Shown here piece by piece: positions 2,739 through 38,440 of a stretch of 57,179 nucleotides of DNA. The notes under the pieces are model-generated. The model was not told where the DNA came from. It made no database searches and worked only from the letters and a program-made list of their open reading frames with translations. A program made the position numbers and the translations under genes. Every line of letters begins with the position of its first letter. The first letter of the stretch is position 1. This DNA is from Klebsormidium nitens (Eukaryota; Plantae; Klebsormidiophyceae), in assembly GCA_000708835.1 (NCBI GenBank), contig DF237525.1:1-57179 (forward strand), written 5' to 3'.

Positions 2739-5700
2739 TTATGACAACGGAGAATCCGTCGAGTAGACCCAGATCGCGCTGATTTTGGGCTCATCTCGAG
2801 TCCCGGTCCCCCGGAAATAGACCTCCAAATTGGGGCCGTCCAATTGGACTGTTCTGGCTCGAACGGGCGCCGCCTTGAACTTTCCCCCCGCGTCCTTGAA
2901 CGGATCGACGCCTATCGTCGCGCCCTCTTGAATGCCGAGGTACTCAATGTTCAAAACGCGCTGGCCGGGCTCATTGACGTTGAAAATGGTCGTGTCGTTG
3001 GGCGAGATCTCGGCGAAGAAGGTGTTGACACTGTAACGGCCTGCGGGGACCTGCCAGAACGGGAGAGAGTGCTTTGGTGTCAAAGTTGGTGTCAGATTTG
3101 ACACGGAGATATGCAAGAAGCGCTGCGCTTGGCTTGCTCGCAAACAAATACCGTAGTTTGTGTTCGAAGATGAGATACTTAAGACTGCGGCCGAACTTGG
3201 ACGATGAGGAGAGAAGCTGATGTGACAAAGTTCTCAAGACGTTTGCGACAGTTTGCGTTCGAGTGCCTCCAAGTTGTTTTGATCGGTTGATCTACCACGA
3301 AATTGCTTCTGTAATGGAACGACATGAATGTCGAACGAACAGATCGAAGGAAAAGGGCTTGGCTGAGACAAGAGCACCGGTTTATAAAAATCAAGGGATG
3401 ACGGACATAAAGAAGATGGCAGACTTTCCAAACGCAAAATTTACTTACCACAATCAGGTAGTGGTTCGTCCCAATCCGCTCCGCCTGAAAGATCTTAGGG
3501 TCAGTAGTCCCGGTAATGGTTTGTTCGGTGGATGCCGCGAACCCCCCGTTCGCACCGTTATCGTCGAACCGGCAGTACGGCGCTCCGGGGGGCATGTCGC
3601 GGAGGTTGAGGCAGGGGGTGTCGTCAGCCTTGAACGTCACGCCGAACGTGCTGACGTAATCAGAGAAGCCTCCGCAGAGGACCGCAAAAGAGAATTTTCC
3701 GTTGTTGACGGCGGGTGGGGACTGGGACAGAACGGGGACGCCCGCGATCAAACCGGTCGCGCCTGTAAAACAATCGAGTATATTCTCCTTTGTCTTGTTT
3801 TGGTGAATATCATCTTCGGGAAGAAAGTACGAAACAACCCATCGGCCCCAAGTCTCTTCCGAGCTTTGAACTTTGAGAAGCGACTTCAGCAACTTCGTCT
3901 TGTCTTTTCCTGGGATCCAGAATGATAAGAACGGAAAAACGCGGTTTGCTCTCAACCTGCGCAGTTTACATCCTGGCCTAAAACCCATTTGCAGGATCCT
4001 GTGTAACTTGATGAGTGTGTTCGCTCGATATGAGGTGGCAAAGATGCGGGCCAGGATTTAGTCAGCATACTGTAATTACTGTACTCTACACAGCCTCTTC
4101 TTGCTTCCGAGAAATACCTCTTAAACGCGTGGGGTTGCAACACGCTATGCGACCCAATGACCCAATCATTCGCTTTTCGGCCTTCGTCATCGACGCTCTG
4201 AAATTACTCTCGAATATGCCGTACCCTCTTCGTTCTGGCTACTTGTCGAATCAATGGACCCGCTTCATGGAAATGAATATTTAAGATGAGGCAACGGAGA
4301 TCTGTTCTTCAGACGCCACCCAACAAAATTTAAAAACCACTGAAGATCAGAGTTACCAGCCTCAGCGTGCACAAAGCTTACTCAGGCGTATGAGACGACT
4401 GACCGTATTTACAAGAGTCACATCTTTCGGTCTCGCCGTTCCGCGACTTAGAGACGTATGCCAGTCTGCAAGCTCCACCTGATGAGCTGCACAATATCTC
4501 AGTAATACCCCGCCGAGAAATTTCAAAAGATTGTGGCAGAACGTATCAAGAATCGACGGATCGAAGGGCAGCCTCACCTGACGGGAAGCTTCCCGCCTGC
4601 GACGGCGCCAAGAAACCAAATGCTGACGTGGCAGTCGGCGCGCTAGCCGGCCCGGCCGTAACTGCGGTAACCGCAGGCGACGGCACCGCTGTGCCTGCTG
4701 ACGTGGCAGGCGCGACAGCTGGCGCGACCTGGGGGCTCGCAGCTGACGTCACCGGGGTTTGAAGGTTGGGGGCGGGGGCGGGGGCGGGGGCGATGGCGGG
4801 AATAGGCCCCGGGGCAGAGTGAACGAAAACTGCGTTGAGGAGGGGGGGAAGCGGGGACGTGCCGGCGAAGGAAAGGGTTAGGTTACCGCCCTGGGTTAGG
4901 TTGACCGGAACCTGGTCAAGAAAAAAGGAATCACGCAGGTTTAGTTTTTGATACCAAAGACTTGGGTCGGGCTGGTAGGTGTTTGAATACCGAGCGACTT
5001 GCGAGACCAATCACCGGCTTCTCGCCACCATTCCCAAAATTAGTCGGATCCTTTCAAAGCTCCCTCTTTTAGAATAGTAGCAAGCCAATTCTTAGTCGAT
5101 GTCAAACTCTTCCTTCCACGGTGAAAAAACATGCAGCACATCAAGGGCGATTAGCGACCATTCTTTCATGGTTTACGGCGAACCTCCCTTTCAGGAGCCC
5201 ACGTTTATCTTAGCTCATCCGATCGACCCTTCGTAGAGTTCAGCCACGATTCAACCGAACAACGCCCCCTCTTCGTCTTTTCGCACCTCCTGACCTCCAA
5301 GAGACTTCTACAACGCAGAGCACATTCAACCGAGAGGACAAAAGTGTGTGGTTAAAAGCTCGAATTCAGCTTATCGATGCTTCGATTTCGGTCTTCAAGT
5401 ACCAATGGACGACTTCTTGTGGTTACTGCTAACCTGTAGCACGAGCGCTGTGAAGTTGGCCCCCGTCGTGGCGTAGATGTCGACATTGGGCGCCACGATG
5501 ACGTTTTGGGCGGACACGTTGAACACGCGCTGTCCGGCACCTATGAGAGGAGGGATTTGCAATCAGGAACTGGGCTTTGAAAAGGTCGCCCTCGTATGGC
5601 AGTGCGTTCACGTGCCTCCAATTTGGACGAGATTCGAGTGCCAGACCGTGGGTGCACGTGCGTAAATTGACGCGTCGACATCTCGAAGACTTGCACTGAC

Positions 5701-8700
5701 CAACGGCCAGACTGGCCGGGTGATCGGCTGACTGATTCTTCAAAGTCCTGGGGGAAAGTGGACATTTCAGAGGCTTGCACCGATTGAAGGCCACACCGGC
5801 CGCTTGAATTGCTAGTGACTTCGACTCTAAGAAAAAGAAGCGCCTCATATGGTCGACTGAAGCATCCAGTGACGTCACCTTTGCGACCCGTTGGGAAGAT
5901 GCTGACGCCCCAGAGCCCAGAAACCACCGAACGTTCTTTAGAAGCTCTAAGTTTGGGAGTCCGAAACTTAATACTCGAAACTCCAAATGAATCCCACCTG
6001 ACGCTACGGAGGCAGCAAACAATATCTGCGCGGTCCGACACCGTCAAAATGCGACAATCTTAAACCTCCAGAGTGTTACATTTTCATCAACTCTTGAAAT
6101 CCGTAAATTTTCACACCCCCAGAACCTTACTCACAATAATCTTCGATGGAACTCACCGGAAGCGACGGGATCCGCAAAGTGTAGATCGACCAGGTAGGTC
6201 CCGGCGAGTCCCACGGGGAGGCTGTAGCTGAAGTTACCGGTGCGTCCGTTTTTGTACAGGTCGCTGTTTACCTCGGCCGACCGGTACGACGGGAGAGTGA
6301 CGTTCGAGGCGAGGGAATAGTTTGTGCCACCTGCACAATCAGAAAAGTGCGCTTTCAGGATTGTCAGCATCTCAACCATTGTAAGCACATATTTGTAATG
6401 CACAGGCGCTTTTGTGACTAATTGTTGGTCGGTCGGTAAGAGCTTCTGTGAGAGCTCCTGAGAGTTGCTTGAGCATCTCCCATCCATTCCTACGACCTCG
6501 ACATCCTCTCCTCGCGAGTGAGTATACCGAACAAAAAACAGAGGTTTGAAACCTGCGAAACTGCCTGAAAGCAAGAGTAGAGGGCTCATATTTGCCAGCA
6601 AAGATGCTGCGACTTGCATGAAGTCAGAAACGTTCAACCGGCCGACATGGTGTTGGCGGCTGCTCTTGATACTAATGGTGGATTGACGAACCCGGTGTAG
6701 GTAGGCCCCAGACTCGGTAAACCAAAAACCCTAAACCCTCGTCGTTGGACAAATGGCTCACCAGTGAAGTACTGGTCCCGGCTGAACACGATTCCCCGCC
6801 CCGAGAGCACGTCCTGCGGGGAGCCCGCCGCGACCGCGACCAATCGGGAGTTGCCACTTGGCACCACGTTGACGCTCGCCACCGTGGCGTTGCTGCCGTT
6901 CGCGCCGCGGAGGCCGATCGTCAGGAGACCGTTGCTGACGTAAGCAGCGGTGGTAAGCGAGCTCGCGTTGGCGGGGAGTGTGACGGGGACGCCCTGCGGG
7001 TGTGACGTCATCCGCTCTGGTTAGTGACATCATTGGATGGCCTTTCAACTCAGTCTCAATGAACTGGCTCTTATCTTTTGTCCTGTACGCTGAAGATCCA
7101 CCTCACGATCCTCACGAGAAAATCGTTCGTAAGTGAGTTCGAGTCTTGCCGTGCAGAAGAGTACAACCCAAAGTAGTCCCTCGGTTTGGACAGGAGCCTC
7201 TTCAACGTAGCTTAGAACCTCTCGTCTTGTGCCACTTCAGAAAATCGTGGCTGGCTTTTCGTGGAGTCACTTTTGAACGCACAGTATAAGTCGCACTTTC
7301 AGGGGCTTAGCCAGTGACCACAACCCCTTTAGCCAATCAGTGCAAAATCCTGGATTTCGGTTACAAAGACCTCGAAGTTTGTTGAACACTGCCCTGAACT
7401 TTCGCTTAACCATGCTCTTACGCCTCACCTGGATCAGCACAATTGGCTGGCCAGTCGTGTTAAAAAGCCCAGTCCCGAAGTCGAGATCGACCTCGTAGTT
7501 TCCCCGCGCAAGGTTAAGGGCGTAACCAAAATCGGGACCCGTGCGAGCATCTTGCTGGGGGGTAGCAATGAAAAATTGGGCGGTGGAAAGGATTGTGGTG
7601 CCTGCGCAAGGACGGGGACTGATTAGCTAAACGCGTTGCTAACTCGACACGGGGTACTGTTTCAACTTTTTGACGGAGGATGCTGCAGTAGGACGGATGG
7701 AGACTAGCGGCCCAGAAAAAGTGGAGTTCCGGTCCAATGAAAGGCAACAAATATCCGACTCGACTGCTATATGCAAAAGACCGCTTGAAGGAGCCATATA
7801 AGTGGTACAGATCAGATCAACATGCTCCACGGTTTGAGGTGGGGTTAGGGTGGATTCTGGGCCGCTAACCTCGTTCCGCAGAGCATGTTGGTTCTGGGTT
7901 ACGGTTTGCAATCTACGTGAGCCTGGGGAACCGATGCAACCCAATGTAGGCCTAAATCGCAAAGCTGAAACTTGAATCAACTCACTTGTCCCGTAATAGT
8001 ACGCATCAGCCGTGTAATTTCCGATAGCGGCACCACCGGAGTTGATCGCGAAGCTCGTGGGTAAAGCCAGCGAGCTGTTTGACGTCGTGCTGTTGTCAGA
8101 GATGCGGATTGCGCTGATGCGGGCGGGCGCTCCGGCAGCTGTCAGGACAATACTGCAAGAGCCACGTGGCAACATGATGTCAGCAACAAATGAGAGGCAG
8201 CAGAAGTTATTGGAGCGACCGAGAAGGGGACCAAGTAGAGTACTTTGTAGGTTGTGCTGATGCAGAAAGTGCGCCGACTCCTGTGGAGAAGACAAGTGCC
8301 AGTCCGGCGTCACCCAAAAAGTAACATTCTAAGGGTCAAACCTTCACGGCCAGTTCGCTTCAATACTAACGCTCACTGTGCTGAAAGGGCTACACGAGGT
8401 GTTGAAGCAAGGTCTGGTGTGGAGGACTTGGCAGGTCTTTGCTGCACATTCTGCTGACGTCAGCACCCCACGATGTTGACACATGGTTAAGGGGCGGTGG
8501 CCCGAGGATCTATAGAATGTCGAAAAAAGAGCCTTCAGGAGAAGGGAGTCGATCAAGCAAGTACAAGAAACACAAGCCCTACAAAGCAACCAGCTCGCAG
8601 TTGCGGAAGTGCAGTGAAACAACGTGAGACCCGCCTGAAACAACGCGATTGTGTTGAGGTCACGGCCAAGAACTGCCCCTTAAGAGATGCTTTCTGCCTT

Positions 8701-12132: not shown

Positions 12133-15100
12133 ATGGCTTCATCACTGATCATCCTCCTTGTGGCGCTCCTAGCCCCATTCACACTCGCCCAGGTCCCCGC
12201 CCCCGCCCCTGTGGGAACAGCCCCCAACTCCAGCTACATTGCAATTAACTGTGGCGGTGTCACGCCGGTAAATTCCAGCATTCCAAGCTACTATGGGGGG
12301 GTGACTTATGGGGCGGGACCCTTCTATTCTCCCAACAATTCTTTGGTGTCCACCAGCAGTGCAGCCCCTGGTGTGATCTTTGCGCCTGACGCATTCTACT
12401 CGGGGGAGAGCACCAAGCCGCTGAGCTATCCGGGTCCACTGAATGCGTCGGTTCAGGACGCAGCTCTGTATCTGACGGAGCGGTATGGGCTGAATTTCAG
12501 GTGAGAAACGGGACTTTCATGAGGAACTCATGGCCTGTCCCTGCGGATGTAATATGGAGAAGGTTTGGGAGCTTCAAGAAAAGTTGTGGGCTGAGGTTCA
12601 GTTTGGTCAAGAACGATTTTCATAGAGATTGGCTCGAGGATGGGCTGTAGTGTCTGTGAAGGGTCAGCATTGTGTTTCCTCGGGCTTGATCTTGGTTTTC
12701 AAGGCGCCAGTTTGCCACCAACACCGGATCTACTTCTTGGCTGCTTCAAATCATTGTGATTAGTGGTTTGAGAATGAGGACGTTTGTTGGATGGGGAAAA
12801 GCTGTCTTGAAGCGGCCAGCAAGCTCCAGCTTCTGACGCGTGAAATCAAGGGTCATGCTGTGGTGTGATCCTCTTGGTGACGAAAGGACAAGCTCAGATG
12901 ACATCAATTGCGGAGATGCAGCTCCCTTTTGGCCCCACAATTCGGTCTAGTTGTAGAGAGGCAATGCGGTTGTGATGTTCGGAGCCAGGGCATTCCGCGT
13001 GGGATGGGTTGCTGTACAATGCTGTCTACAAAGAGAACACTGCTTGCTTTTTTCCAAGTTTTCTCGAAGGCAGTGTTTACATGCAGTAGTGACTGGCAGG
13101 CCAGAGAGTGAGCTTGCTGTCGCGAAAACAGTGGAAGATCTTGATTTTTCTGCTTGCCAAACCAATTGGCGGTCTAAGATTGCGGAAATCTACATCAAAA
13201 TCAACGATCTGGATCACAAGAAGCCTCCGCTGCCGATTCCTCTTCATTTGCCATCTCTATGTCTGGCTGGTTGTGAGAATCACGCGTATGGTTGACTTTA
13301 GCTTCATTGCACTGCTTACGTCCTACAATTGCGCAATGCCAGTCTTCAAATCTTTTTTACAATGCTCTCTGCCACAGGCTGCAGATGGCCTTGTTTGCCT
13401 TTGTGCCTTATGGTTGTTCTTTGTCGTGATGTTGGTTCATTCTCTCGGCACTCTCAGCGCCACTTCAAAATGGTTCTACAGAACTGTTTTCGTTCATTTC
13501 AGCAACTTTGAAAGATTAAGCTGTGATAGCCATCCACTGGTTTCTGCCAGATCCGCTTGCCCAAGTGTTATCAGTAACATTGCCTCGGGGGTGGTTCTCA
13601 ATTTGTGACTATCGACATCCGCTTGATTGTATGTCGTCATACATTCAATGCGGCGCCGCCCCATCATCAGCTTTGGCTCACCTAAGCAAGCTTTTACATA
13701 ATGAAGCGGAGCAGCAAGATACTCATTCTTTGGTTGAAGTGGAGAGTCCCCTGAAACACCGAGCAGGCACTCCTCCAATTCAAAATTCTTGATATCAGTC
13801 ACCTATCCGACGAGGATGACTTTGGAAATTTCTTTTGTTTGGGATCTGTGATACTTGCGATCTAGTTTGCCGTATCCGAGGGCTTGCTGCCTGCTCATAA
13901 CGTATGGGCCGAGACCAAGCTTTGCCCAAATTGCAGCTACACTCCACATGAGCACTCTGCTGTTGTGACCGACCTCTATTGAAGTGGCTGTTTGCAAGTT
14001 CACCCTGCCCCTAAATCAGTGATCAGACCCTATAAACCTGAAGGTAGGGCTTTGGCCATGCCTAACCAGTCCCCGCTCAATAGCAAAACTTGCCGCACCA
14101 AGTCTTGAACCCTCAATTTTCAAAAAAAGGTTCCCACTTTTCAAGTGCAATACTTGTGTTTACAGTCACTCCTCATCAATGGTGTCCTGTATGTTGGGGC
14201 AACGCATACAGTGTCAATCAAACATAGCTGCCTCCGCTCAGAGAATCTTGAAGTCCTAACCCTCTTTACTAAGGCCTTGGCACTTTGTCTTCTTGAAACA
14301 ACGTTTTAGTGCCGAAGTTGACAGTTCGGCCATCCGTTTAATCTTGCCACTGCCCCCAGATGCCCCGCAGTGACCTGGTTGTCAGTCGCCAAACCCCCTT
14401 CCGGCAAGCTAACCTGACCCGATTTCTGGTTATGAGGTATGACCTCGACATTCCCAACGGCAACTACGCGGTCTTACCTTCTTTTTGAGAGTCCAGTATA
14501 ACACCTCAAACCCAGTGATCTGCAGCTTTTCTACTTTTAACCTCTCAACATGTTAACAAAGCCCAAAGAGACCCAGCTTGCAGGTATGTCTTCGAGGCAA
14601 TTACATGGTCTGCCACATATCGAGCCTCAATCTTCAAACCCGGCAATCTGAAAGTTTTGCTTCACTTTCTTGCAGTCTGCTGACTTCACCCAATGACTTG
14701 TTTATCCAGGTACGACTTCAACGTTCCTAACGGCAACTACACGGTCTTCCACTACTTCTCGGAGCTCCAATACAACACCATTGGCGCCCGCGTGTTCAAC
14801 GTCAGCATCCAAGGCGTGGTGGTTGCTCCCTTGGTCGATATCTTTGCGCTCGCGGGCGCAAACGCGAGCCTGATCGTCCCTGTGAACACCACCGTCACAA
14901 ACGGACTGCTGACGTGAGTCCTCTACCGCTGACCTCAGGTCTTTTCTGTGAAGTCGTTTCGTTGATACTGCTGTGCTTGTAGCTGCAAAGTAGAGCCCAG
15001 TGGGCTTGGTGAGCATGCTGTACTCAGTCGGGCTGCTGAAAGCCTCTTGACCGTTTCGGAAAATTGTTGTGTTCAAACTCTGTTCAAGTAGGCTACTGAG

Positions 15101-18100
15101 ATACGTCTCCAGCGGTTTTTTGAACGCTGGAGCTGAAGGTACAAAATTTAGGTTGTTCTGATTACAAGAGACTTTGCAGCCGATTTACTACACTCTGCTC
15201 TGTGCGTACGGTTGATTCGGTCTTTAAGAACGTTTGACGAATACAGAAAATTCTCTAACCTGAGCTCACGAGAGCAAATTGACTGGCGATGTCAGGCTTT
15301 CAATCCTGACCTTCTGATACCGCAGTAGCGGTTGTGACCATTACAAAAGCCGTTACTTCCAGCTGTTCTGATATCCGGATACTTGTTATCACCCAAAAGG
15401 TGCAGGACTCATGAATGGTGTCTCTCCCGACTAAGCAGAAGATTGCAGCATCGCGCTGAATCCGTTCGCATTGTGTCCATTCGCGACTCACCGTCAAAAT
15501 CTGTTGTCTCATTCCCTTTTGTCAAGCGGTTCCATCCTACTACCATCCTTCTCAGCCGCCCTAAGGCCTCAAAGCGTAAGATCGTTTCATTGCTAGCAAC
15601 ATCCAGAAACAATCTAAAAGGCGCCCATTCTTACTCCCTGCAGGGTCGCGTTCGCCACCGTTTTTGCCACTAACACGGCCGGCCAGGCCAAGGTGAATGC
15701 GCTCCGGATTGTTCCGCTTGCCCCGCCCGCCACGGCCTTCTCTAACACCCCTCCCTCCAGCTACCGTATCGATGCGGGTAGCAACGCTAGCTACACGTCA
15801 GCAAATGGGACCGTGTTTGCCAGAGACGCCTTCTACTCAGGTTCATGTGAGTGCCTTTCAATGACCAGCGTCACGACGATTTTGATTGTTTTGGCATTTA
15901 GTATTCAACCCATTATCTCGCCCTTGAATTGAGTTCGAAAAAGGGCTTCTCTGCTCTGCTCTGCTGTTCACACTCGCTGAGGGTTGAGACGCTTCTTGAA
16001 ATTTTCAATTTGAACTACATAAGAGACGCTTTTCAAGTTTTATCGTTCTAAGTGTTTGCGCTCAAGAACCTCCGAAAGATTGTCCACGAAGATACTCTCC
16101 TTCGTTGAGTTACTTGGTTGAGGATTGCCATCGTATCCACTGCTGTGGGTTGGATCTTACAAGAGCGCACCAGTATTGAATTCTTCGAAGATTGTGTAAA
16201 TACGCCCAGCAAGATCTCCACATCTGAATGTGAAAAGCCGTAAAGTGGCCAACACATCATTCGACGCCGCCTCGTCTTTCGCGTTTATAGTGAACTCAAG
16301 GATCTTCGCAACCAGCAATAAAGCTTTTTTCAGATTCCTCTGGTCACGTGGATTCCATCAGGGGCGTCCAAACATCAGAAAGGACACAGGCGTCCGTGAA
16401 GATAGTCATACACCGCACTGGCTAGCATCCGAAAACGCCAATCCCTCGATTAAAGATATCCCCGATCAACGATTGACTGTTGCACAGCCAAGCGAGGCAG
16501 ATTCAAGCCGGGTCGGTGCTACTTTCACTTTTGGCGAGCTCTCTCGTCTATTGGAGAGGCAACTGTAGTCTCGAGAGACACACCCAATACGCGTTCTACT
16601 CGGTTCGAATTTCAGGACTCGTTAGCCCGCCGCCGGTGAAACATACATTGTAGTCTTCAAGCCGAGGATTGCCAAGTGAGCTGAAAACAAGGACAGCTTC
16701 CCTCAACTACTCGTTCTTTGACTAAAACTTGGAGAAACGAAACTCATCACAGCCCAGAGTTTTGTCCCAAGTGCCAGCCGCAAGGCCCCAAATCCAGTCG
16801 GATCTGGTTTTCTGAACCCGGTTTTTCCTCCCTTCGCGCAGCTGCGATTGGCAACGCCACCGTTGCAAACACCACCGCCGATGCGCCGCTTTACACCACC
16901 GTTAGGACGGGCCCCGCCTTCGCCTACTACCTTAACCTGCTCAACGGTTACTACCTGGTCACGCTCCGGTTTGCGGAGGGCCAGTTCACACTGCCGGGGC
17001 AGAGGGTGTTCTCGGTTGATGTACAGGTAAGGGATATTCTCCCGCAAGGCACTTCCTGGTGTTTCTGTCTGCAAGACTGAAGTGTTCCTAAAGTTACAAT
17101 GCTGAAGTGGTTTGAAAGTGTTCGTTGACAGATGGTTGACAGGCCGAATGATGAAAATGACATTGCAATGCCGACACGAGTCAGCGTGTTCAGGCCAAGT
17201 CTGACCACGGGGGCGGTTAGGGTGGGGATTAGGTGTCTGGTATGGGCGCCTGATATTCTTTGCCGTTCATCGCTAACCTGCTTAACCGTTTTGAGTTCGC
17301 CTTCTGAACGGTTGTTCTTCATCAACCAGCACGCTCCGTTAGCCAGCACGCTGAGGAAAGCAAGTTTGTACGATAATCTATCATGAACCTCTCCCTCTTG
17401 ATTCCTCTTGTTTATTCAGGGCAACCCCGCCTTCCCAGCCGTCGACATTGTCGCTAACTCCTCCGCCGGGTTACCGCTAACCCTCCGCACAACCGCGGTG
17501 GTTGCGAACGGTCAGCTCCGGATTCAGTTCACCGGACTGAACGGCACAGCGGCTTCCGTCGCCACTATTGAGGTGACGCCCCTAGTGGGCGGAACGAATA
17601 CGACGGTCGCCATCGACTGCGGATCACCTATTGACGTCATCTCAGGGGACGGGATTATCTACCAAAAGGACACCTTCTTTGCTGGTGAGCGGCTTCTGCG
17701 TACCGTTTTACTTCTGGTCAATTGCTGACCTGAGGTGTAGACTTTCTCGCTGCTCTTGAAGCCTTGCTAAAAATTTGCTTGAATAAAGTCTCAGCAGGTC
17801 CAAGCCCTGACAGACTCGCTTAGAGGATGAGACTGTCTCTTAGTCAGAGCGTTTCAAGTTTCTAAATTCTAAATCCTTTCTCGAATGCTTCAACACGAAA
17901 CGAGTCAACGCTTCCCGAATTGCACTGCAGGTGGCGCAGTTTCTCACTATTCAATATTCTTCGGAGCAACATGTGGACGAACCTCAACCAGGTGCAAACC
18001 GTAGGGCTGCAGGACTTCACAACCTGCAAAACTCAACGCACTTGTCCTAAATCCATTTCAGAGACCCTGTACGAAACTCGTGTCAAACGTGTCAACTTCG

Positions 18101-28102: not shown

Positions 28103-31100
28103 ATGGGGGGCTCCCAGCTGGTGGTGTGTGTTGTTTTCTCTGCTTTATTGCTTCTGGGCACCGCTCAGAGCCAGCCCGTCGGCGCGCCAGCTGTCAACGG
28201 CGGGTTTGCTCCCGCGCCAGCTCCCATAAAGTCAACGCCGGCGCCGGCGCCAGCTGTCACCGGACCCCCTTCTTACATCGCGATCAACTGCGGAGGGCTC
28301 ACTCCTCCAAACGCCTCGATCCCTCAGTACTACGGGGGGGTGAACTACGGATTCGGGAACGGGAGCTTCTACCAGCCAAACAACAGCTACGTCTCGACGG
28401 CGCCCGCAGGAAAGGGCGACATTGTGTTCCTGACGGATAGGTACTATTATGGGACGAGCACCAAGCCGAGGCAGTACCTGGGCTTTGCCCCATTAAGCGG
28501 GGCAGATGGGGCTCTGTACCTGACTGAGAGATATGGCCTCAGCTTCACGTAATTTTCTCTCCTTGCTTTTCTGTCATTCTCCTCGATACTCGAGTGTGTG
28601 GTTTGTCCAATCAGCGTATGTTTCAAGTGAGTGCTTCTCCTCTTCTTTTCTACTTGGCAGATCTGAGTGCTTGTGGCATTTTTTCCCAGCAGTCTTGTTT
28701 CTCTGGCTACTCGATCCTTTTGTAGAAAAGTACGCTTCTTTCTGGCTACCACGTGATTTTCCGTCGTGGTGGTAGTTTCTAATATCTCGAGGCCTTGTAG
28801 GTTTGTGGGAAAGTTGGCATCGTTGGGCAGTGCCCTGGCCCGATCTCCTCATGGCGCCACCTGTCGCCAGATGGAAATTTCTGGAATGTTGATGACGTCA
28901 CGTGAGATCTTCTGGGATCTAATATGAGATCTGGGTTGGTGGAATCCCCTGGTTAGACATCCTAGCTCTTTGGAGCGAGCAAACGATCAATATGGCAAAC
29001 GTTCATGTTGTAGCTCTCAGTAAAAATTTTGATGCAATTGGAGGACTGCCATGACATTTCATTCCAATTCCCGTGTGCTTTTCCTGACTCCAAGTGTAAT
29101 GAGCTCTGTGAACAAACTTTGGACGCAGTGGGGCAAAGAAGGACCTCCATGTGTTGTTCTCCTGCTGCCAGTAATTGTACTATCCTCAACGTCAAAGCCT
29201 TTCAAAGAACAACAAAGCAAGGCATTTCCACCAGAATATCGTCAAGTCCTTCCTGTGAAAGTCTTACAAATGCAAGTGAAAGTAAGACTTTTCAACTGAA
29301 GGTGCGTTTGATGTCAGCATTTGTATACACGGGGCGGTGGGCCACTGGCACACCGCACTACTGATGATGCAGTTTGAAAGAGCTCGCCTTTCACACCTGG
29401 CATAAGAATATTACATTTTTGCCTTTTCGAAAGCCAATCCTGCCTAAAACAGTTCCTGCCTTGCACTCAGAAAACTGCAAACCTGCAAGGTGTTCGGGTT
29501 GCTTGCTCGGCGCTTTGAGTATCTTGCTGGTCTTGTCCGAGATTGCTTGTGTGCAAAGTTGAGCATTTGGGACTTGGACTGTGAATTGTCGAGCTCCACG
29601 GTCTTATACTGCCCACGGTGAGGGCTTATGGGTGGCACTTGGCGGCGTGAATCATTGCACTCACCGCTCATACGCCTTCACTTTCAAAGATGTATTCCGC
29701 TCGCCCAATTTTTGAGAGATTCCGCGGTAAGCAATAAGGATAAAGTTAGCAATAAACTTAGGCTGGCCTGTTTTCTTTGATGATCTGGAGCGCCGTTACT
29801 TTCTTTCATTCAGTACTCTTTCCTGCGGTACCTAGATCAGACTGTCGAGACTCTGAGGAGTTGCCACTCCGTATTTGGTGACGACATGTTGACATGGGAT
29901 TGCTCCTGAAGCCCCACGCAAACTGTCAGCGCATAACGCCATCGAAGGGTCACAACTAGGAGTGTTCCTCGTTAAAGGTTAAGATTGCAGAAAGATAGAT
30001 GGACTTGCAAGCTTGCGTAAGAGAGGCTCTCAAAACCGACGCTCTTAGGACCTCTTCCCTTATAACACCTTTCGTGGCCACTTCCTCTTCTCAACCAGTG
30101 TCTTGCGGTTTGCAGTTACGAACTGGACTTGCCGAACGGCGTCTACAACGTCGACCTCCACTTTGCCGAGACGCAATTCAACCAGGTCGGCGCGCGCGTT
30201 TTCAGCGTCACAATCCAGGGCGTGAAGTCGGTGCCAAACCTCGACATTTTCGCGACCGTGGGCGCCAACACCAGCACCATCGTGACAAGGCAGGCGACGG
30301 TGTCAAACGGCCTCCTCAGGTGAGCGTGCGCCACTTCCGTTGATTCCTGGCAACGTTCTCTCGTGTCCACCACGCTTTACAAACCGGCGAAGGAACTCGG
30401 TGGAAATTGCGAAAGTGAGGGAAGCAGAGTGTTGAACACAATTTCTTGATTCCCAAGCGAGTTCAAACTTGTTAACCAACCAATCGAAAGTTCATCGAAA
30501 TCTCAGGATGTGATGAGTCTTGGGAAACTTTTGCCAATGACACGCCCTGCGGGCAAACTTCGAACCGTGCGTAGTCTATACGCACCAACATGAAGCTTGC
30601 CTGGATTATAATACAGCATCTATGACCAGAACATGTCTCGTTTGGAGACCGCGACAGAATCTCTCAGGAAAAAACGCCCTTGACTGCCTTACGTCTGCAA
30701 AAACCTTTTCTTAGAAGTCATTTCCCCTTCGAGAATCGCTCCCGACACCTGTCTTCCTCTTTGCAGCATTCTTTTCGAGACCGTCTCCTCAAACGTAGGC
30801 GACGGAGAGGCCAAGGTTAACGCCATCCGGGTTTACACGGACTCGAGCACTAACGTGCCCTTCCCGGCCCCCCCGAGCTCCTACTTCGTTGACGCCGGAG
30901 CGAGCGCTTCCCGCGTTTCCCCCGACGGTGTCAACTACACGAGGGACTCTTACTTCTCGAATGGAGGTTAGTGTAACCCGACCCTTCAGCAGGTATTGCT
31001 AGAGTCAATCGTTCCAGCTTTTGACGCCGGAGCGAGCGGTTCCATGTCTTTTCTGACGGCGTTAACCACACCAGGGACTCATACTTCTCAGACGAAGTTA

Positions 31101-34100
31101 GTCTAACCTAATTTTAAGTAGGTCTTGCTAGTGTCGGCATTTTTGCCCTGAAGATTCCCAAATAAATTGTAGTGTAACTTGACTTGAGTAGGTAACGCTA
31201 CTGTCAATTGTTCCACCCTTTACTTCTTACTTCCATAAGAGGGATAGCATGAAGTGCGTGTAACCTATCTTGCAAAAACCAAGCTAAGGGTGTCACGTCA
31301 TACTGGAAAGCAAAGGTTCCAACCGGAGGTCTCAATCCGAACATATCTGTGATGTAACGTCTGCAAGCGCGTCGATTATGATCCAGCACCGTCGTCCCTT
31401 TTCTTTGACTTCGTTCTCTTTCTACCCACAAACTAGGTTACCTCCCCTCCCATCGTCTCCTTTCCGTTGACACAATTCTCCATGCTCAGATCAGTTCAAT
31501 CATCTGCAAGCCACAACTGCAAAACACAGTGAAGTGTCAGAGCTCAAGGCTAGCAGCGGCTCCTTTCTGTCCTCTTCGATTCTGTCTTTCCTTTACGTCT
31601 ACACTTTTTGTTTCCTCTCGTTTCTTTTCGTTCTTGTCGAAGTCCGTCCTTACGATGTACCTCCATCCAACACAATCATCTCAATTTAAATTCTCACAGA
31701 CTCACCTTTCTCAAACAGCCGCCGTCGCCTTCACGTCCGTCGGCGCCCCCTCCCCCCTCTCTGTGGCGCAAACCACCGACGCAATCGTTTACTCCACCGC
31801 TCGCGTCGGCCGCAGCTTCTCGTACTACTTCAACCTTCCGGTTGGCCATTACCGGGTGGAGCTCGCGTTCGTCGAGGGCCAGTTCACACAGCCCGGCCAG
31901 CGGCTGTTCACGGTCGAGATCCAGGTGGGTGTGAACGGGCCTTTTGGGCAGGACTCTTCTCGTCTCACTTTCTAGTTCGGTGAATCTTGTGTTCGGTGAG
32001 AACAGGTCCTTTTGAGCAAGAAACTGGAGGGGAGAGTCTTCCCTTTTTTTGCTCGTCCTAGTTCGACGAGCCTTCTCTTTGGTATGACCAGGTCGGTTTG
32101 AGCAAGACTCGGAGGCGAGTCTCTTCTGTTTTCTCGCTCGTCTCGTTCAACGGACGTTCTCTTTGGTGCTAGCAAAACGTGCACACTTAACCATAGGCCC
32201 GGCATTACGGAATTAAGTGTGGGCCTATGGTTAAGTCCACTTTCTTCCCAATACTATTGCCGTGTTCCCCGGCAACAGTTTTGTCTGCAAACGCTCCTTT
32301 GGGTGAGTGATGTCAAGTCTCGTACTCTCATCTCCCGTACTCACAGGGCATGCAAGCTTTCCCGGTGACTGACCTTCTTGCAAAATCCTTCCTCCGCTGT
32401 CGGTCAAGTTGTTCACCCCCATCCTTGGTTAACCGTTTACTCCCATCTCCAATTGTTTCAAAGTGTCCTCAAGCTTTTTCAGTAATCGACATCATTGCAA
32501 ACCTGTCCGCTGCCCCTTTCCTCGCCCTCAAACCAAAACCCTGGACCCCCATCCTGATTTGAACCATCATCCGCTTCAGGGTGTCCAGGCTTTCCCGACG
32601 ATCGTCACCATCGCGAACTCGACTTACGCCCTTTCCCCCGCCCTTAACCAGTTTTGAAACCCCATTGGTGGCCCTATCTATCGCCCACTTAGACCAAACC
32701 CGTAATCCCTATCGTTGGCTAACCCTTTATCCTTTCCCAATTCTTTATAGGGCGTGCAAGCTTTCCCGACGATCGACATCATCGGAAACTCAACCTACGC
32801 GCTTTCTCCCGCCTTTGACCGAAGTCTTAACCCCCATCCTAAACTCGATTTCCATTTGTTACAGGGCGTGCAAGCTTTCTCGACGATTGATATTATTGGC
32901 AACTCGACCTACGCGCTTTCCCCCGCGCCCGCTCCCGCCCCCGGCCCCGCCTCATACCTTTACACCCCAACCTCGTTCAACCTCACAACCGCGGCCGCCG
33001 TGGCCAACGGGCTGCTCCGGATCGACTTCAACGGAACCAACGGCGGGAACGCGACCGTTTCCGCGATCAAAGTGACACCGCTCAATGCGAACACGAACGG
33101 CACGCTCGCGATCGACTGCGGGTCGCCAATCGACGTGCTGTCCGGGAATGGCGTCATCTTCCAAGCGGATACCAACTTTTCCGCTGGTGGGTTGTCCATT
33201 GCTCGTGCAACTTGTTTCGTTTTTTTGCCGGTGTTGTGAGAGGAGCAGGAGTTGTCTTTCTCTTCTGAGAGAGGGCACATTCTAGCACTAGTGGAGAGCC
33301 AAACAGTGATTCCTGAACACTGGTCGATTACGCTTCCTTCGGCCAATTTCGATGTTGCACATCAGGTGAATCCTAATGTTTTCCTTTTGAGATAGCTGCT
33401 GATGCGATCAACCAATGTATCCAGAGTTGACCTCATCGAATCGGGAAACACGTATCCGCTGATTAGGAATCTCCGTTATGCTGACTGAAGCTTGGTAGAC
33501 AGCACGACTGAAGCTTGGTAGACAGCACCTTCTGTGCAAGGCAAATGTTGCGCCAACCAGCTCAGGTGCCAGCTTTTCTGCTCTTCGGATGCATCGTTGG
33601 CCGCATGACATGAACGGAAGGAAACCTACAAGATCTGACGGTTTCCTTCTTTCACGTTTCGCAGCAAGCTACTCGGTCCAGAGCAACCCGTACCAGGTGT
33701 TTTTGCCGTACAACGATGCTGTCGACGATTTCCTGTACCCCACCGTGCGCCAGGGCAACTTCACCTACAACTTCTCGCTGCCCAATGGGACCTATTTGGT
33801 CACGCTCTACTTTGCCGACCTTAACGCGACTGGTGAGCGTTTGCTCGTCTCTTTTTGACTGCCAAGTACAAAATATTCTATTGTCTTCACCTGAATTTTA
33901 TTGTCGCCCAACGGGACCTATTTGGTCACGCTCTATCGTGCCGACCTGAACGCAAACGTCAATTATCATTCTACACGTCGTGGGGGATTTCCAATTAGAC
34001 CTTGTGCTTGTCAAAGCTTCGGCGACTGGAAGGCTTGCACGTACTCCATGAAACTGTTACGAACTACACGCCGAGGAATCGGAGCGAAACAACCGCCTCG

Positions 34101-37100
34101 AGGCTTACAAAAGGCTTACAAAAGCCTTTTGCCACTTCATTCGCGAATCTGGTTGGAACACGAGCTCTGCTAAGGAGCCTCTTGATGCCATGATCTTAGT
34201 TGAAAGTCAAGTTTAATATCTGGATAGTGTTCGTGCCTTTGACGCTTTCTGTTTCCAACGAAGGGGCGTTTCTCGACGAAGGGGCGTTTCTGTTGGGCTC
34301 AATGCTTCCTATTTCAAGAACAAGGATTGCTTAGAATGTAAGAATCTGTTCCTGACTTAGCATCTGTCGCTTGCAGGGCCCGGTCAGCGCATCTTTGACG
34401 TGTACATTCAGGAGGTGAAGGTGCTCTCGCAACTAGACGTGTATGCCAGGACGGGCGGCGCCATCACCGCATACATCAGACAGGTACTGTCCAAAGCCAT
34501 ATCCCGTGGCGAGTGCAAGATACTGCACATGTATTGTCGATCACGTTTCCTGTGGCGAGTGGAAATGAGTAGTACGTCAAAGTTCGGTGCGTGCTTTACT
34601 CGAGGGCTCTTGCTCGGGCTCTCGCTTTGAAGTAACGTCATAGGATCGAAGCCCGCATTTGATTGGTGCCCATATTCTCTCGCGACATTGCCTTCTAAGG
34701 ATAGTCGTCGGGATTCGTGGACGTATTGCTTTCTACCAACAAGGTTGCAAGTCTCTGCCATTGGAGGGCCATGAGGGGTATGTGAACCTCTTTCGAACTC
34801 ATCTTGGCGCTCCGATTCACCTTCCTGAATCGCGGCCTACGCTGACGTCACCTTTTCCGCCCCGCAGTTCCCCGCCAACGTCACCAGCTCCCGCTTCCTC
34901 TCAATTCGCTTCCAGACCAGCCCCGACGCGCTCTCGCTCCCCAACGTCTCCCCCCAAAACTACGTTTTAAACGGGACCAATTACGCCAACGCTCTTTACC
35001 CCCCCTTCGTGAGCGCCCTCTACGTCGAGCCAGGGATACCCCCGGCCCCCGCACCCGCAAGAACGGTCGTCGCGCAAGCCCCCCGGCCGATCGGACCCCC
35101 CCCACCGCCGGGCGCGCCCGACCCGTACTTCGCTTATGTGAATACCCCGGCGGATCTCCCTCTGGGACCGGTTCCCCCGGTTCCGACCTTTGGGGGCGCG
35201 GCGAGCGCAAACCCGAGCTGCCCTGCCAATGGGGCGCCGCCGCAGGTGGGTGTCAGTTCGATGTGTTTCGATGGGTCCGCTTACGGAAATTCTGGTCAAA
35301 TCCTTTGGAAACATCTTTCTGGGTGACACATCGAGATCTGGGTCCGCTTACGGAAATGCTGGTCAAATCCTTTGGAAACATCTTTCTGGGTGGCTATGAA
35401 GGTTTGGACGAAATCTAGTTACAAACTCTCTCTGGGCTTGCTCGAGAACAATTGTGAGGCTGGCTCATGCAAGGATTGCGCCGTGATTTTTATAACCTCG
35501 TGCCCGAAAACTTTGTGCATAAGCCGAGTTTTTCTTTGACACTCGTCTCTGTCCCTTTTCCTCTCTTCAGGCGATCAATTGCACCGGCCCCTGCCCTCTA
35601 TGGACCCCCCCCTTCGGTCTCAACGTCGCCGTAAATGCCGCCGGCCCCCGCTACGTGTCGTCGTGCGGGATCGTTTTCGAGGACGACTCCAACAACTCGA
35701 CGCGCTGCGGTCAGGGTGACGTCATCCCGCAAGGCGTCCGGTGGTGCAGGTGAGCGCCCGGGAGTCGGTGCGCTTTTGTGCTTTCGCGTACATGCTTCGT
35801 TCCTGTTTGTGAGTGATTCTGGTCGGTTCCACGACCTTGTCTTGGTCCCAGTTCTCCCCCTCACCTTTATTGGTAGAGCTTCCTCTGCATTTGTACCCTC
35901 AAAGTTCTGGTCGTCGGAATCCTCATAGGACATTTCCGGGACTCCAACAATGTCATTTCTATTGATCTGGTCTTAGAACAACCTCAACCCTTCTATGCGT
36001 TGCCTTCAGATTGACTCACTTTTGGTCCGAGTTAAACCCATCTTAGTGAATCCTCTTTGGAGGCGTCCGACTCAAACACTCGTTACAGTGAGTCATCTTT
36101 GGAGGCGCCGAAATCAGCATCCCGCCAACTTTTTATGTTCTATCGGATTCAAGAAAGGGCTTCAAGAAAGGCCGCTAAGGACTCGTCTGCTTGACCCAAA
36201 ACGTAAACACTAAGCAAATCGTTGCACCGCCTGCGTGACCCAAAACGTAAACACTAACCATATTGTTTCACCGCTCGCGTGACCCAAAACGTAAACACTA
36301 ACCAGATCGTTACACCGCTCGCGTGACCCAAAACGTAAACACTAACCGAATGGTTACACCGTTCGCGCAGAACCAACATCAAGGGACCTGAGGGCGGTTA
36401 CCAATTCTCAACGGGCGAGGGCATTTTCAACACGTCCGACCCGACCATTTTCCAGAGCGAGTTCATCGGATACAACACGTACAAGTGAGCGACTGTGCTA
36501 CCGCAGCAACATGCCGTTTGGGCATTGATTGTTCTCGTTCGATTCTGCCCGAAAGATGTAAACGCTACGGATAGTGTGAATGTCAGTTTGCCCAACTCGT
36601 CAAACGATTGGCAATCCGATATAAGAGGGCCGATGCAGGTACATTAAAGTGATGAAATAAGCCTTTGTCTGCATGTTTTCAGATCACCACCAATCCCAGA
36701 TCCCCAAACGTATTGCCCAAATTGCAAAACATACAAACTGAAAAGTGCTCAACCCGCATCGCATGTAAGTAAGGTATTGCGCAATCCCTTCTTCTCCATG
36801 TTTTGTCAGGAGATTTCGAGCTCCTTTTGCCTTCGTAAAGAAAAGCCCTATACTCCCAGCTGCACTTGAGCAGGAAAAAACAATCTGACAAATCATTAAA
36901 ATATATCTCTCGTGCTCGTGAAATTGCGACGCTTCTTAGGGCTTTAGAACAGATGCTAGAAACCGTTTCTGTCTCCAAACTTCGAAATGCTAGAGAGGAC
37001 GTGGTTTCGGCGACGCGCCATTAAGCAAACCGACTCGCTGGTCGACCATGTCTCGTCACCGTGTGATCTTTTAAGGATTTTAGTAGGGCGACCATCGTAG

Positions 37101-38440
37101 TCAAGGCTCCAGTGAGAGAGTCGCCCGTGTAGGTGCATCCGCCCAGACTCCCCATTCGAGTTGATTGTTTGGAAGTTTTGATTTGGATCATAACGGGATT
37201 CAAATGCCGTACAAAATTCGGAAGGTTTGATTGGATCATAACGGATTGAAATGCCACACAGTTTACCGCACTTGGCAGCTCTGGCCCGCTGAGTTCCACT
37301 AACTTCCAAATGCTGTTTTACAGAGAAGACCTTCAAGTTTTGTCCTATTCACAAACTGAAACTATTCACACCGTGCAGGTTCCGGCTGCCGAGCCCCGGT
37401 GTTTACCAGGTGTACTCCTACTTCGCCGAGGTCTCCGGGGACGACCCGATCATCAACGTGAACCGGCCCGCGCTGCGAATCTTCTACATCCATTTCAACG
37501 GCAACAACGCGGACGCGATCGGCCCGATCGATCCCTTCGTCCTGGGGGGTGACCGGAAGTTTTATGCTGCGCCGGCGATTGGACGGGTGAGTTTTCTCAA
37601 GACTCTCGCTGCTTCCGAAGAGGCCTTCTTGTGCGCCGGCACTCGACATTGGGATTCCGTTCGAACTCTTGATCGAATGAGCGCTTGGGAGAGAGAATGT
37701 CAAAAACGCTCTCAAGGATTGGGGATGTGAGGCGAATCTGTGTGGGTTTTTGTCGTAGAGTTGGGGTGTGAGTTTGGGATTTGGAAAGGATCGGAGTCGA
37801 CGATTGGGGTATCGGAGCGGAGATCGAGGACCCCTTTTCCTGAGAAAACGATGATGATGTGTTGCTCTCTTTGTTGCTTGCTTCCCGGACTTGCCTTCTC
37901 CTGCCACTTTAGCGCTCCGTAACTTTGCACTCCACGTTGCGTTCTTTCAATCCGAAAAGTGAATCCTTAACCCAAGAAGCGAAAAGGACGGATTCCTACC
38001 GCATAAATCAGTATGCTTTGAACAATTCTTGAACGGCACTCGGTCCAAACACACGAGTCAGCAGTTTGGGTGTTCCGAGAGCACATTAAGATGACGGCGA
38101 AAGTCTGCCACAGATTGTCACCCAACCAGTCGGGAAGATTGCCACTCATAAAACGTTACTCTGAAGCGTGCACGTTTCTTTACAGGGCGTGCAATGCAGC
38201 TCCAACGAGCTCAGTATTCAGTACGAGGCGGTCGCGGCCGGTCGGGATGCGCCGGCCATCAAGGGTATCTGGGTTTACGGCCCCGTGGACGCCAACTTTA
38301 ACGCCATGGCACCCTTGGGTGCGCAATCTCCTGCTAGCCCGGCCAGTGGTGTCAATGCACCCCCTCCCCCCGTCGGTGTGCCCCCGAGTGCCGCTTCGTC
38401 CGGTGCCCCAACGCCCGCGCCGACACCGAGCGGCTCTTAA
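28103..38440 (+). CDS. Gene C: secreted protein with 4 malectin-like domains, Pro-rich linker and Cys-rich module (about 928 aa, 12 exons); closest paralog of gene B
   Basis: Exons 28103-28548, 30116-30319, 30767-30966, 31719-31924, 32865-33186, 33665-33832, 34377-34483, 34868-35245, 35571-35749, 36371-36484, 37379-37586, 38186-38440. Total 2787 nt. Exon lengths 204, 168, 107, 179, 114 and 208 are identical to the gene B exons. Signal peptide MGGSQLVVCVVFSALLLLGTAQS. Confidence 0.9.
32185..32236. repeat. Perfect 16-bp inverted repeat with a 20-nt loop, gene C intron 4
   Basis: ACTTAACCATAGGCCC (32185-32200) and GGGCCTATGGTTAAGT (32221-32236). Confidence 0.85.
32344..32820 (+). repeat. Four decayed tandem copies of the acceptor plus 5' end of gene C exon 5
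   Basis: Copies begin at 32347, ~32462, 32580 and 32751 and encode variants of GVQAFPTIDIIGNSTYALSPA. The real exon starts at 32865. Confidence 0.88.
35273..35392 (+). repeat. Direct duplication (67-bp period) in gene C intron 8
   Basis: GGGTCCGCTTACGGAAAT(T/G)CTGGTCAAATCCTTTGGAAACATCTTTCTGGGTG at 35273 and 35340. Confidence 0.9.
36193..36370 (+). repeat. 44-bp tandem repeat x4 ending exactly at the acceptor of gene C exon 10
   Basis: GACCCAAAACGTAAACACTAA... units at 36193, 36237, 36281 and 36325. The last copy ends in GCGCAG (the acceptor). Confidence 0.92.

Follow-up and report, generated by a model that had tools for sequence, protein, structure and literature searches.

Three paralogous genes for predicted secreted multi-malectin proteins form a conserved cluster in the streptophyte alga Klebsormidium nitens

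Plant malectin domains are familiar almost exclusively from the extracellular portions of receptor kinases with a role in surveying the cell wall, and their ligands are debated. The question raised by a 57,179-nt stretch of K. nitens DNA (contig DF237525.1 of assembly GCA_000708835.1; hereafter the window) is what such domains do in a group of genes for which an earlier note, made from the letters alone, had described no receptor or kinase part. Comparison by tblastx showed that positions 2739-38440 hold three paralogs, here called A, B, and C, that are collinear over their whole length, and a three-way protein alignment gave identities of 41% (A-B), 40% (A-C), and 56% (B-C). The arrangement given in the note, with A and B head-to-head and B and C in tandem, held exactly, down to the gene limits (Table 1). 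All three genes are nuclear and rich in introns.

Every modelled splice site in A, B, and C is GT..AG. Introns 1-7 agree in position and phase among the three genes, as does a 107-nt exon 7, which the note had picked out and which RNA confirmed in C; further downstream the claim of shared intron positions gave way, with A lacking two introns (exons 9 and 10 are fused, as are exons 11 and 12) and B having one additional intron within exon 8. The model of gene A came from a paralog-guided splice search, and its exons 8 and 9 are predictions only. RNA evidence concerned gene C only, in its 3' two-thirds, the models of A and B being derived from sequence. Spliced RNA contigs from four runs in four studies matched C exons 5-12 base for base and confirmed introns 5 to 11 (seven introns) together with the end of exon 4; exons 1-4 are predicted, and their summed length, 1056 nt, is consistent with the 1247 nt lying upstream of exon 5 in an RNA contig. 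The C mRNA contigs pass the stop codon unspliced into the 3'UTR, to about 38640-38920, and there is therefore no downstream transmembrane or kinase exon for C. Gene C is thus the best supported of the three, its expression and true C-terminus being established. Searches of the open reading frames downstream of and between the genes found no kinase, LRR, or other Pfam match, which together with the end of the C mRNA upheld the description of the proteins as lacking LRR and kinase parts.

Table 1. Positions of the genes, exons, and protein-coding features of the cluster in the window
Feature	Positions	Strand	Remarks
Gene A	10796-2739	-	10 exons, 776 aa; ATG at 10796, stop codon 2739-2741
A exons 1-5	10796-10492, 9349-9137, 8152-7986, 7601-7429, 6993-6762	-	
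A exons 6-10	6330-6157, 5540-5434 (107 nt), 4911-4578, 3762-3449, 3050-2739 (including stop)	-	
A signal-peptide-like N-terminus	10796-10734	-	Kyte-Doolittle
Divergent intergenic region between A and B start codons	10797-12132	none	1336 nt
Gene B	12133-25399	+	13 exons; ATG at 12133
B signal-peptide-like N-terminus	12133-12192	+	Kyte-Doolittle
B exons, first seven	12133-12500, 14710-14913, 15644-15846, 16842-17026, 17420-17684, 18110-18277, 18805-18911 (107 nt)	+	
B exons, last six	19738-19987, 20663-(gap)-21468, 22337-22515, 23383-23496, 24232-24439, 25202-25399	+	
B exon 8b, Pro/Ala-rich linker exon	20663-21468	+	contains assembly gap and apparent frame problem
Gene C	28103-38440	+	12 exons, 928 aa; stop codon 38438-38440
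C exons 1-6	28103-28548, 30116-30319, 30767-30966, 31719-31924, 32865-33186, 33665-33832	+	
C exons 7-12	34377-34483 (107 nt), 34868-35245, 35571-35749, 36371-36484, 37379-37586, 38186-38440	+	
C signal-peptide-like N-terminus	28103-28174	+	MGGSQLVVCVVFSALLLLGTAQSQ; highest Kyte-Doolittle window
C exon 2, core of malectin domain 1	30116-30319	+	PF11721 56.9 bits, E 3e-15
C exon 4, core of malectin domain 2	31719-31924	+	PF11721 43.2 bits, E 5e-11
C exons 6 and 7, core of malectin domain 3	33665-34483	+	PF11721 26.7 and 26.0 bits; splice RNA-confirmed
C exon 8, end of domain 3, Pro/Ala-rich linker, conserved PYFAYV...NPSCPANG motif	34868-35245	+	both borders RNA-confirmed
C exons 9-12, divergent malectin domain 4 with Cys-containing insertion, Pro/Ala/Ser-rich tail, stop	35571-38440	+	hhalign, RNA

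Gene B contains an assembly gap (scattered single Ns from 20738, solid N at 20838-21253) inside its Pro-rich linker exon, and reading on from exon 8a leads to a TAG at 20713-20715, shortly before the low-quality letters; given the gap and the apparent frameshift next to it, reading continuity across this region cannot be established from this assembly. On its 3' side (21254-21468) the gap is followed by sequence whose frame continues into exon 9 and through exon 12. The in-frame TAG after the 8a/8b splice, the shift of frame before the gap, and the loss of canonical motifs from the first two domains of A would all fit a cluster that is partly non-functional, with at least B a decaying pseudogene, but we regard such decay as very improbable. 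An assembly error is the likely cause, because the TAG lies only ~25 nt before the single-N run and the gap, in a GC-rich homopolymer stretch. Moreover, both halves of B (5' part, dN/dS 0.146 over 554 codons; 3' part, 0.11 over 230 codons; together the range 0.11-0.15) are constrained relative to an ortholog (JGI metagenome contig L001/L009; 71-84% nucleotide identity, in exons only) whose equivalent linker exon (L001, about 6330-6628) is open, with no stop. Across A, B, and C, dN/dS against sister-species orthologs was 0.07-0.15, with dS above 1, and the exons were conserved end to end whereas the introns were unalignable. For C, exons 2-12 are each kept end to end in the ortholog on L005 (dN/dS 0.147 over 766 codons), and for A the first and last exons have orthologs in other assemblies (dN/dS 0.10 and 0.07, respectively) that keep the C-terminal ...STDSPLS-stop. 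Stop positions and the character of the tail are kept in the orthologs of all three genes, and the head-to-head arrangement recurs in the sister species (L009: A exon 1 at 943-659 on the minus strand, B exon 1 from about 1977 on the plus strand). Purifying selection acts on the genes, and the cluster is conserved in the sister species.

The protein encoded by C starts with a signal peptide, followed by three malectin domains of canonical type; a linker rich in Pro and Ala then leads to a fourth malectin domain, which is divergent and bears Cys. In all three proteins the N-terminus is the top Kyte-Doolittle 19-residue window (2.0-2.3), and in these profiles we found no second transmembrane-like segment outside domain beta-strands or the linker and no GPI-type hydrophobic C-terminal tail, the last 20 residues averaging -0.51 in A (...SPLS), 0.17 in B (...PTSA), and -0.22 in C (...PSGS); these profiles agree with the signal peptide and hydrophilic ends reported earlier. 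Each malectin domain is divided over 2-4 exons and none lies whole within one. The PF11721 profile (gathering score 23 bits) was run exon by exon and its scores are for this reason lower bounds; besides the C exons listed in Table 1, it matched A exons of domain 1 (26.2 bits) and domain 3 (23.1 bits). Domain 4 stayed below threshold (18.4 bits on the last exon of A, no match on C exons 9 and 11). Against a malectin reference built from 12 Pfam-delimited malectin segments, however, hhalign aligned its N-terminal half to template positions 3-51 (96.4% probability, E 1e-9) and its C-terminal half to positions 63-144 (98.4%, E 8e-15), and a profile of the latter half matched Pfam-verified malectin proteins at E 1e-12 among 1.84 billion proteins. 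A local HMM of Pfam-delimited malectin segments recovered all four domains of C and, in B, 3+1; in A it was weak on domain 1 and missed domain 2, the two being eroded (hhalign 60% and 81%). Judged by these sequence profiles, all four domains are homologous to malectin. The claim of four malectin domains in each protein therefore stood for C, by Pfam for domains 1-3 and hhalign for domain 4, but is blurred in A by the erosion of its first two.

Two database searches found the nearest relatives to be bacterial or metagenomic multi-malectin proteins, none of them with a kinase, and the nearest solved structures to domain 1 were those of animal malectin (2JWP/2K46), ahead of a plant receptor kinase. 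This affinity does not support the earlier suggestion that the algal proteins are soluble counterparts of the ectodomains of malectin receptor-like kinases (RLKs). The bacterial "malectin domain-containing carbohydrate-binding proteins" and their metagenomic counterparts likewise carry tandem PF11721 domains behind a signal peptide, some with no other domain (e.g., five domains in P0022, four in P0012, and a signal peptide plus six in P0098-P0100), and they gave the best full-length matches, reaching 329 bits locally for the 5' part of B, with single alignments covering three consecutive domains. Most of them, none characterized, have extra modules (T9SS tails, Ig-like, fn3, TIG, subtilase, GDSL), and they differ from the algal proteins in having no spliceosomal introns, Pro/Ala-rich linker, or Cys-bearing fourth domain. 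Land-plant malectin proteins also have a signal peptide and put the malectin fold to use at the cell surface, with tandem domains in CrRLK1L (PMC8287233). The land-plant classes (LRR-malectin RLKs, CrRLK1L/FERONIA, MLD-LRR-RLKs, MLD-RLPs, and malectin-domain kinesins) are, however, each described with a transmembrane segment, LRRs, kinase, or kinesin motor, which the algal proteins lack. The algal domains are of PF11721 and not of PF12819 type, and they number four instead of one or two. For the plant lineage, a secreted four-malectin build with neither anchor nor kinase has no description.

Malectin domains are carbohydrate-binding modules (PMC8287233), and in Xenopus malectin the sugar is contacted by Y67, E87, Y89, Y116, F117, and D186 (PMC13335976). 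Alignment of C domain 1 with 2JWP placed Q/F at Y116/F117 and R at the position counted as Lys123 (human Lys138, PMC13335976). Overall, the Xenopus contact residues appear to be only partly kept, and the E..Y pair is absent from domains 2-4. The E87/Y89 pair, going by what we take to be the Xenopus motif, apparently survives as TERY in B and C, and there only in domain 1. Domains 2 and 3, which lack TERY, may have other ligands or serve as spacers. Lectin activity is not to be assumed, since the malectin-like domains of plant CrRLK1L receptors work mostly with proteins and peptides as partners.

The earlier note had also called the proteins AGP-like and possibly Hyp-glycosylated. By composition, A has a ~70-residue Ala/Pro/Ser/Thr stretch, and B and C have PAST-rich stretches of 30-60 residues at the N-terminus, linker, and tail; a signal peptide combined with a PAST-rich region of clustered AP/SP/TP is the compositional mark of chimeric AGPs. 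The likeness to chimeric arabinogalactan proteins and Hyp-rich glycoproteins extends to the placing of short stretches with AP, SP, and TP between folded domains, but the algal stretches are short (about 30-70 residues) and there is no GPI signal. Klebsormidium has been reported to show no reactivity to AGP antibodies (PMC7612518), which counts against classical AG glycans and leaves composition as the part of the claim that stood. Each protein has about 22 N-glycosylation sequons.

Taking domain content and predicted topology together, we favor the reading that these proteins are soluble, secreted, multivalent glycan-binding glycoproteins of the wall, and we think it probable. A cleavable signal peptide would send each protein out through the secretory pathway as a chain in which three malectin (CBM57-type) domains follow directly on one another and are joined by a Pro/Ala-rich linker to the divergent fourth domain with its Cys insertion and then a short hydrophilic end, presumably heavily N-glycosylated, to judge from the sequons, and possibly O-glycosylated in the linkers. 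Several lectin modules on one chain could then bind, and so tether or organize, polysaccharides of the wall or extracellular matrix. First candidate ligands would be glucans such as callose, in which Klebsormidium walls are rich (PMC10762512).

Three other roles were weighed against this one. The absence of any transducing part would also suit soluble signaling partners located in the wall, where they would hold back ligands or offer them to membrane receptors, by a logic like that of LRX or LLG with CrRLK1L receptors, and thus an early, unfused form of wall sensing by malectin; in land plants it is mostly within receptor complexes that malectin and malectin-like domains function, and those MLD-RLPs that lack a cytoplasmic domain have been proposed as RLK partners (PMC8287233). 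By analogy this is conceivable but rather unlikely, as there is no receptor kinase among the nearest relatives, CrRLK1L and RALF are reported absent from charophyte data (bioRxiv 10.1101/2020.12.23.424085), and in the exon-wise search PF12819 (CrRLK1L type) stayed below its gathering score of 24.5 bits, its best match being 16.8 bits on C exon 2, where PF11721 scored 56.9. Similarly doubtful is that the proteins are defense or biofilm lectins, acting in agglutination, adhesion, or exclusion on the glycans of bacterial or fungal neighbors in the alga's terrestrial biofilm and not on the wall of the alga itself. The closest relatives are multi-malectin proteins that bacteria secrete or carry on their surface, equipped with T9SS sorting tails and with Ig-like and hydrolase modules, and local expansion with paralog divergence (A at 40% to B and C) is characteristic of proteins directed at other organisms; on the other side, the full-length C transcript was assembled from RNA of ordinary cultures in four studies, and dN/dS of 0.07-0.15 indicates plain purifying selection and not an arms race.

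A place in the ER lumen, as glycoprotein quality-control factors like animal malectin, is the least credible of the three and we give it hardly any weight. Animal ER malectin (Xenopus 2JWP/2K46, human 6S7T/9IKP) is indeed a member of this Pfam family and, among solved structures, the nearest to domain 1, which appears to keep TERY; LY.TER.G and FAE, at the sugar-binding site, are motifs common to both. Yet the animal protein has a single domain and a C-terminal membrane anchor and acts in the ER on Glc2-N-glycans, whereas the algal proteins have four domains, no C-terminal transmembrane anchor, no H/KDEL-like end, and long Pro-rich linkers of a kind typical of extracellular proteins.

Where the binder of wall glycans that we favor came from bears on the receptors of land plants. 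The cluster could preserve a pre-receptor state, the stock of later LRR-malectin and CrRLK1L ectodomains, or else a multivalent wall-glycan binder acquired independently from bacteria, a proposal that we advance with considerable reserve. If true, with either origin, malectin domains would have been in streptophyte walls before the receptor kinases of land plants, and the question becomes whether receptor ectodomains arose from such wall proteins or the algal array came from bacteria. Klebsormidium was among the organisms covered by a 2019 lectin survey, which listed malectin domains only for embryophytes and one red alga (PMC6362431); this record is corrected by their presence in Klebsormidium. 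Here an early-diverging relative of land plants has conserved genes, C among them with RNA, that use malectin four times in a predicted secreted protein, and such natural soluble proteins would provide material for learning the ligands of malectin domains in the plant lineage.

The three collinear paralogous regions that tblastx detected in the window were modelled as genes A, B, and C with a splice-chain search that took conservation among the paralogs as its guide, after which all junctions were inspected by eye; every modelled splice site is GT..AG. The earlier note had described a cluster of three secreted proteins with four malectin domains each, and the outer limits of our models match its coordinates exactly. 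Its layout of the genes was likewise reproduced, as A and B lie head to head with 1336 nt between their start codons, C follows B in tandem, and a 107-nt exon 7 is common to all three. The claim of common intron positions held for introns 1-7, which agree in position and phase, but not for the complete set: A has lost two introns (exons 9 and 10 are fused, as are exons 11 and 12), and B has one extra intron within exon 8, which is also found in B's ortholog. Aligned proteins were 41% (A-B), 40% (A-C), and 56% (B-C) identical. Introns abound in the window, which is eukaryotic DNA with a GC content of ~50%. The NIN-like RWP-RK gene beyond the cluster is convergent with C, and this gene and the short-chain dehydrogenase on the side of A assign the window to the green plant lineage.

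Genes, repeats, and other features located in the window
Feature	Position	Strand	Remarks
Short-chain dehydrogenase exon	255-710	minus	adh_short by Pfam, E 1e-10; downstream of gene A
Gene A	10796-2739	minus	10 exons, 776 aa
Gene B	12133-25399	plus	13 exons, 600 aa + gap + 303 aa
12/36-nt repeat	18288-18396		Starts immediately past donor of B exon 6
Run open in three frames	19985-20320		Intron after B exon 8a
Assembly gap in B	20838-21253		Solid N; single Ns from 20738
Gene C	28103-38440	plus	12 exons, 928 aa
C intron 4	32330-32926		Contains decayed exon-5 copies
Decayed copy in C intron 6	33885-33953		81% identical to exon 6 3' end (33759-33827)
44-nt x 4 tandem repeat	36192-36367		Directly abuts acceptor of C exon 10
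NIN-like RWP-RK gene	about 40.6-51.2 kb	minus	RWP-RK domain by Pfam at 44997-45584; PB1-like end near 40664-41065, judged by eye only

Contigs of four RNA runs from four studies were compared with 32650-38649, the part of the gene C region from just before exon 5 onward, which is contained at ≥99% identity in runs carrying two organism labels. Each of the four runs had a spliced contig with the same seven joints (33186|33665, 33832|34377, 34483|34868, 35245|35571, 35749|36371, 36484|37379, and 37586|38186), which are exactly those of modelled C exons 5-12, and the loose end of the contig before 32865 is the end of exon 4. One contig extended 1247 nt upstream of exon 5, a length consistent with exons 1-4 (1056 nt) preceded by ~190 nt of 5'UTR. 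At the other end the contigs ran unspliced through the TAA at 38438-38440 and on to about 38640-38920. The RNA thus shows that C is transcribed and agrees with its modelled splicing; the gene ends at the stop codon placed by the earlier note, with no downstream exon joined to it.

Two introns of C contain decayed partial copies of its exons. In intron 4, the acceptor of exon 5 together with the opening 60-100 nt of that exon recurs upstream in four decayed copies at spacings of 114-171 nt; these were missed by Tandem Repeats Finder and detected by a general repeat search; in the RNA the acceptor at 32865, belonging to the last copy, is alone in use. The decayed exon-6 copy in intron 6 was absent from the RNA contigs.

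Ways in which these proteins might be membrane-bound were weighed. No spliced contig in the four runs joined C to a downstream TM or kinase exon, and the ORFs between and downstream of A, B, and C gave no kinase, LRR, or other Pfam match; a downstream kinase exon was rejected. So was a GPI or TM anchor; by hydropathy, all three proteins have hydrophilic C-termini, and strong hydrophobicity is confined to the N-terminal segment (Kyte-Doolittle 19-residue score 2.0-2.3). A role as an ER malectin was also considered and rejected.

Gene B is interrupted by an assembly gap within exon 8b, which encodes the Pro/Ala-rich linker between domains 3 and 4. To the left of the gap, joining the exon 8a donor to the 20663 acceptor gives a frame that reads AAVVAPAPAVVAPPPHL up to a TAG at 20713-20715; an adjacent frame goes on with ortholog-like sequence. 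To the right, the frame of exons 9-12 extends back through 21254-21468. Because of this frame break and the run of Ns, continuity and frame of B across the gap are not demonstrable. The break could mark B as a pseudogene, but it more probably reflects an assembly error at GC-rich homopolymers; the orthologous exon in the sister species is an open frame. In the intron after exon 8a there is also a stretch in which all three frames are open for ~90 codons, with repetitive Pro/Gly/Phe/Cys-rich translations, and this has the look of a low-complexity repeat, not of coding sequence.

Single exons served as queries in the Pfam, PDB, and library searches, and each malectin domain extends over more than one exon; the joined spliced models were used only in local hydropathy, HMM, phmmer, and alignment work. 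Against PF11721 (Malectin; gathering score 23), C scored 56.9 bits for domain 1, 43.2 for domain 2, and 26.7 and 26.0 for domain 3, and A scored 26.2 for domain 1, 23.1 for domain 3, and 18.4 for domain 4; the CrRLK1L-type PF12819 was below threshold on the C exons. Domain 4 is divergent and has an insertion of ~19 residues with cysteines, but its N-half (96.4%, E 1e-9) and C-half (98.4%, E 8e-15) matched, by hhalign, a profile made from 12 malectin segments delimited with Pfam and jointly cover template positions 3-144. Trained on Pfam-delimited segments, a local HMM placed the four domains of C at residues 111-226, 258-365, 435-567, and 731-857 and found 3+1 domains in B; in A, domains 3 and 4 were clear, domain 1 was weak, and domain 2 had no match, while hhalign recovered the core of A domain 2 at 81% and the C-half of domain 1 at 60%. 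By descent A is thus a tetra-malectin, but two of its domains (1 and 2) are eroded.

The solved structures nearest to domain 1 (C exon 2) were, in order, animal malectin, a bacterial GH2 binding module, and a plant receptor kinase; a PDB search with C exon 1 gave chance matches only. A TERY motif, which we take to include two of the sugar contacts of Xenopus malectin, is retained in domain 1 of both B and C. In the published list of those contacts (PMC13335976), the place of Y116 is occupied by Q here, and the remaining domains diverge further. Some of the domains may have other ligands or act as spacers.

N-x-S/T sequons are numerous, with 22 each in A and C and 24 in the two readable parts of B, and Pro/Ala/Ser/Thr-rich stretches follow the signal peptide, separate domains 3 and 4, and are present in the tails of B and C. 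The AGP-like reading of these proteins agrees with this composition, but Klebsormidium reportedly shows no reaction with AGP antibodies (PMC7612518); the AGP label describes composition and is not a finding. Klebsormidium walls are reported to be callose-rich (PMC10762512).

Orthologous loci in a sister species were reached on metagenome contigs via exon-sized ORFs from related algae. Contigs L001/L009 carry the B ortholog with A exon 1 upstream in head-to-head orientation, and a separate contig, L005, carries the C ortholog. The alignments cover the exons along their full length, at 70-85% nt identity, but not the introns. The dN/dS values, which are rough because dS exceeds 1, were 0.147 for C (766 codons), 0.146 and 0.11 for the 5' and 3' parts of B (554 and 230 codons), and 0.10 and 0.07 for the first and last exons of A (94 and 103 codons). 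Stop positions and hydrophilic tails are kept: A ends in ...STDSPLS in both species, and C ends in ...PTPSGS where its ortholog has ...PTPVGS. An RWP-RK gene also follows the C ortholog (L005:16790-20252), in the orientation opposite to that in the window, which suggests an inversion between the two. Downstream of the B ortholog (L001:12172-17971), in the place occupied by C in the window, is a block with an integrase (rve) ORF.

A HMMER search of 1.84 billion representatives with the domain 4 profile gave 83 matches, of which the top three were algal exon fragments and the remainder multi-malectin proteins with bacterial modules (T9SS tails, Ig-like domains, fn3, TIG, and subtilase); kinase motifs were absent from all of them. 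A second, word-based search added ~1100-aa proteins that have six malectin domains behind a signal peptide and nothing else (P0098-P0100). The neighbours of P0098 on its contig match WDR3-like beta-propellers and DUF1749 and are eukaryotic-looking, and the source of P0098 may be an intron-poor eukaryote instead of a bacterium. Neither search returned a protein of this genome; since the second search scored only 8000 candidates and bacterial words prevailed in its query, this absence is no proof that annotation of A-C is missing. Sequence affinity gave no support to a reading of A-C as soluble RLK ectodomains, the nearest relatives being the kinase-free multi-malectin proteins with bacterial modules.

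In a lectin survey of 2019 with K. nitens among its species, embryophytes and Porphyra were the only reported sources of malectin domains (PMC6362431). The plant malectin proteins listed in a 2021 review are all RLKs, RLPs with a TM helix or LRRs, or kinesins (PMC8287233). We found no description of secreted multi-malectin proteins of streptophyte algae in the full-text literature. The tetra-malectin cluster is a real feature: A-C are conserved, C is expressed, and all three code for soluble secretory proteins with four malectin-type domains, which we infer to be glycosylated, to reside in the wall or matrix, and to bind glycans multivalently. As such, the cluster bears on wall biology and on the origin of plant malectin receptors.
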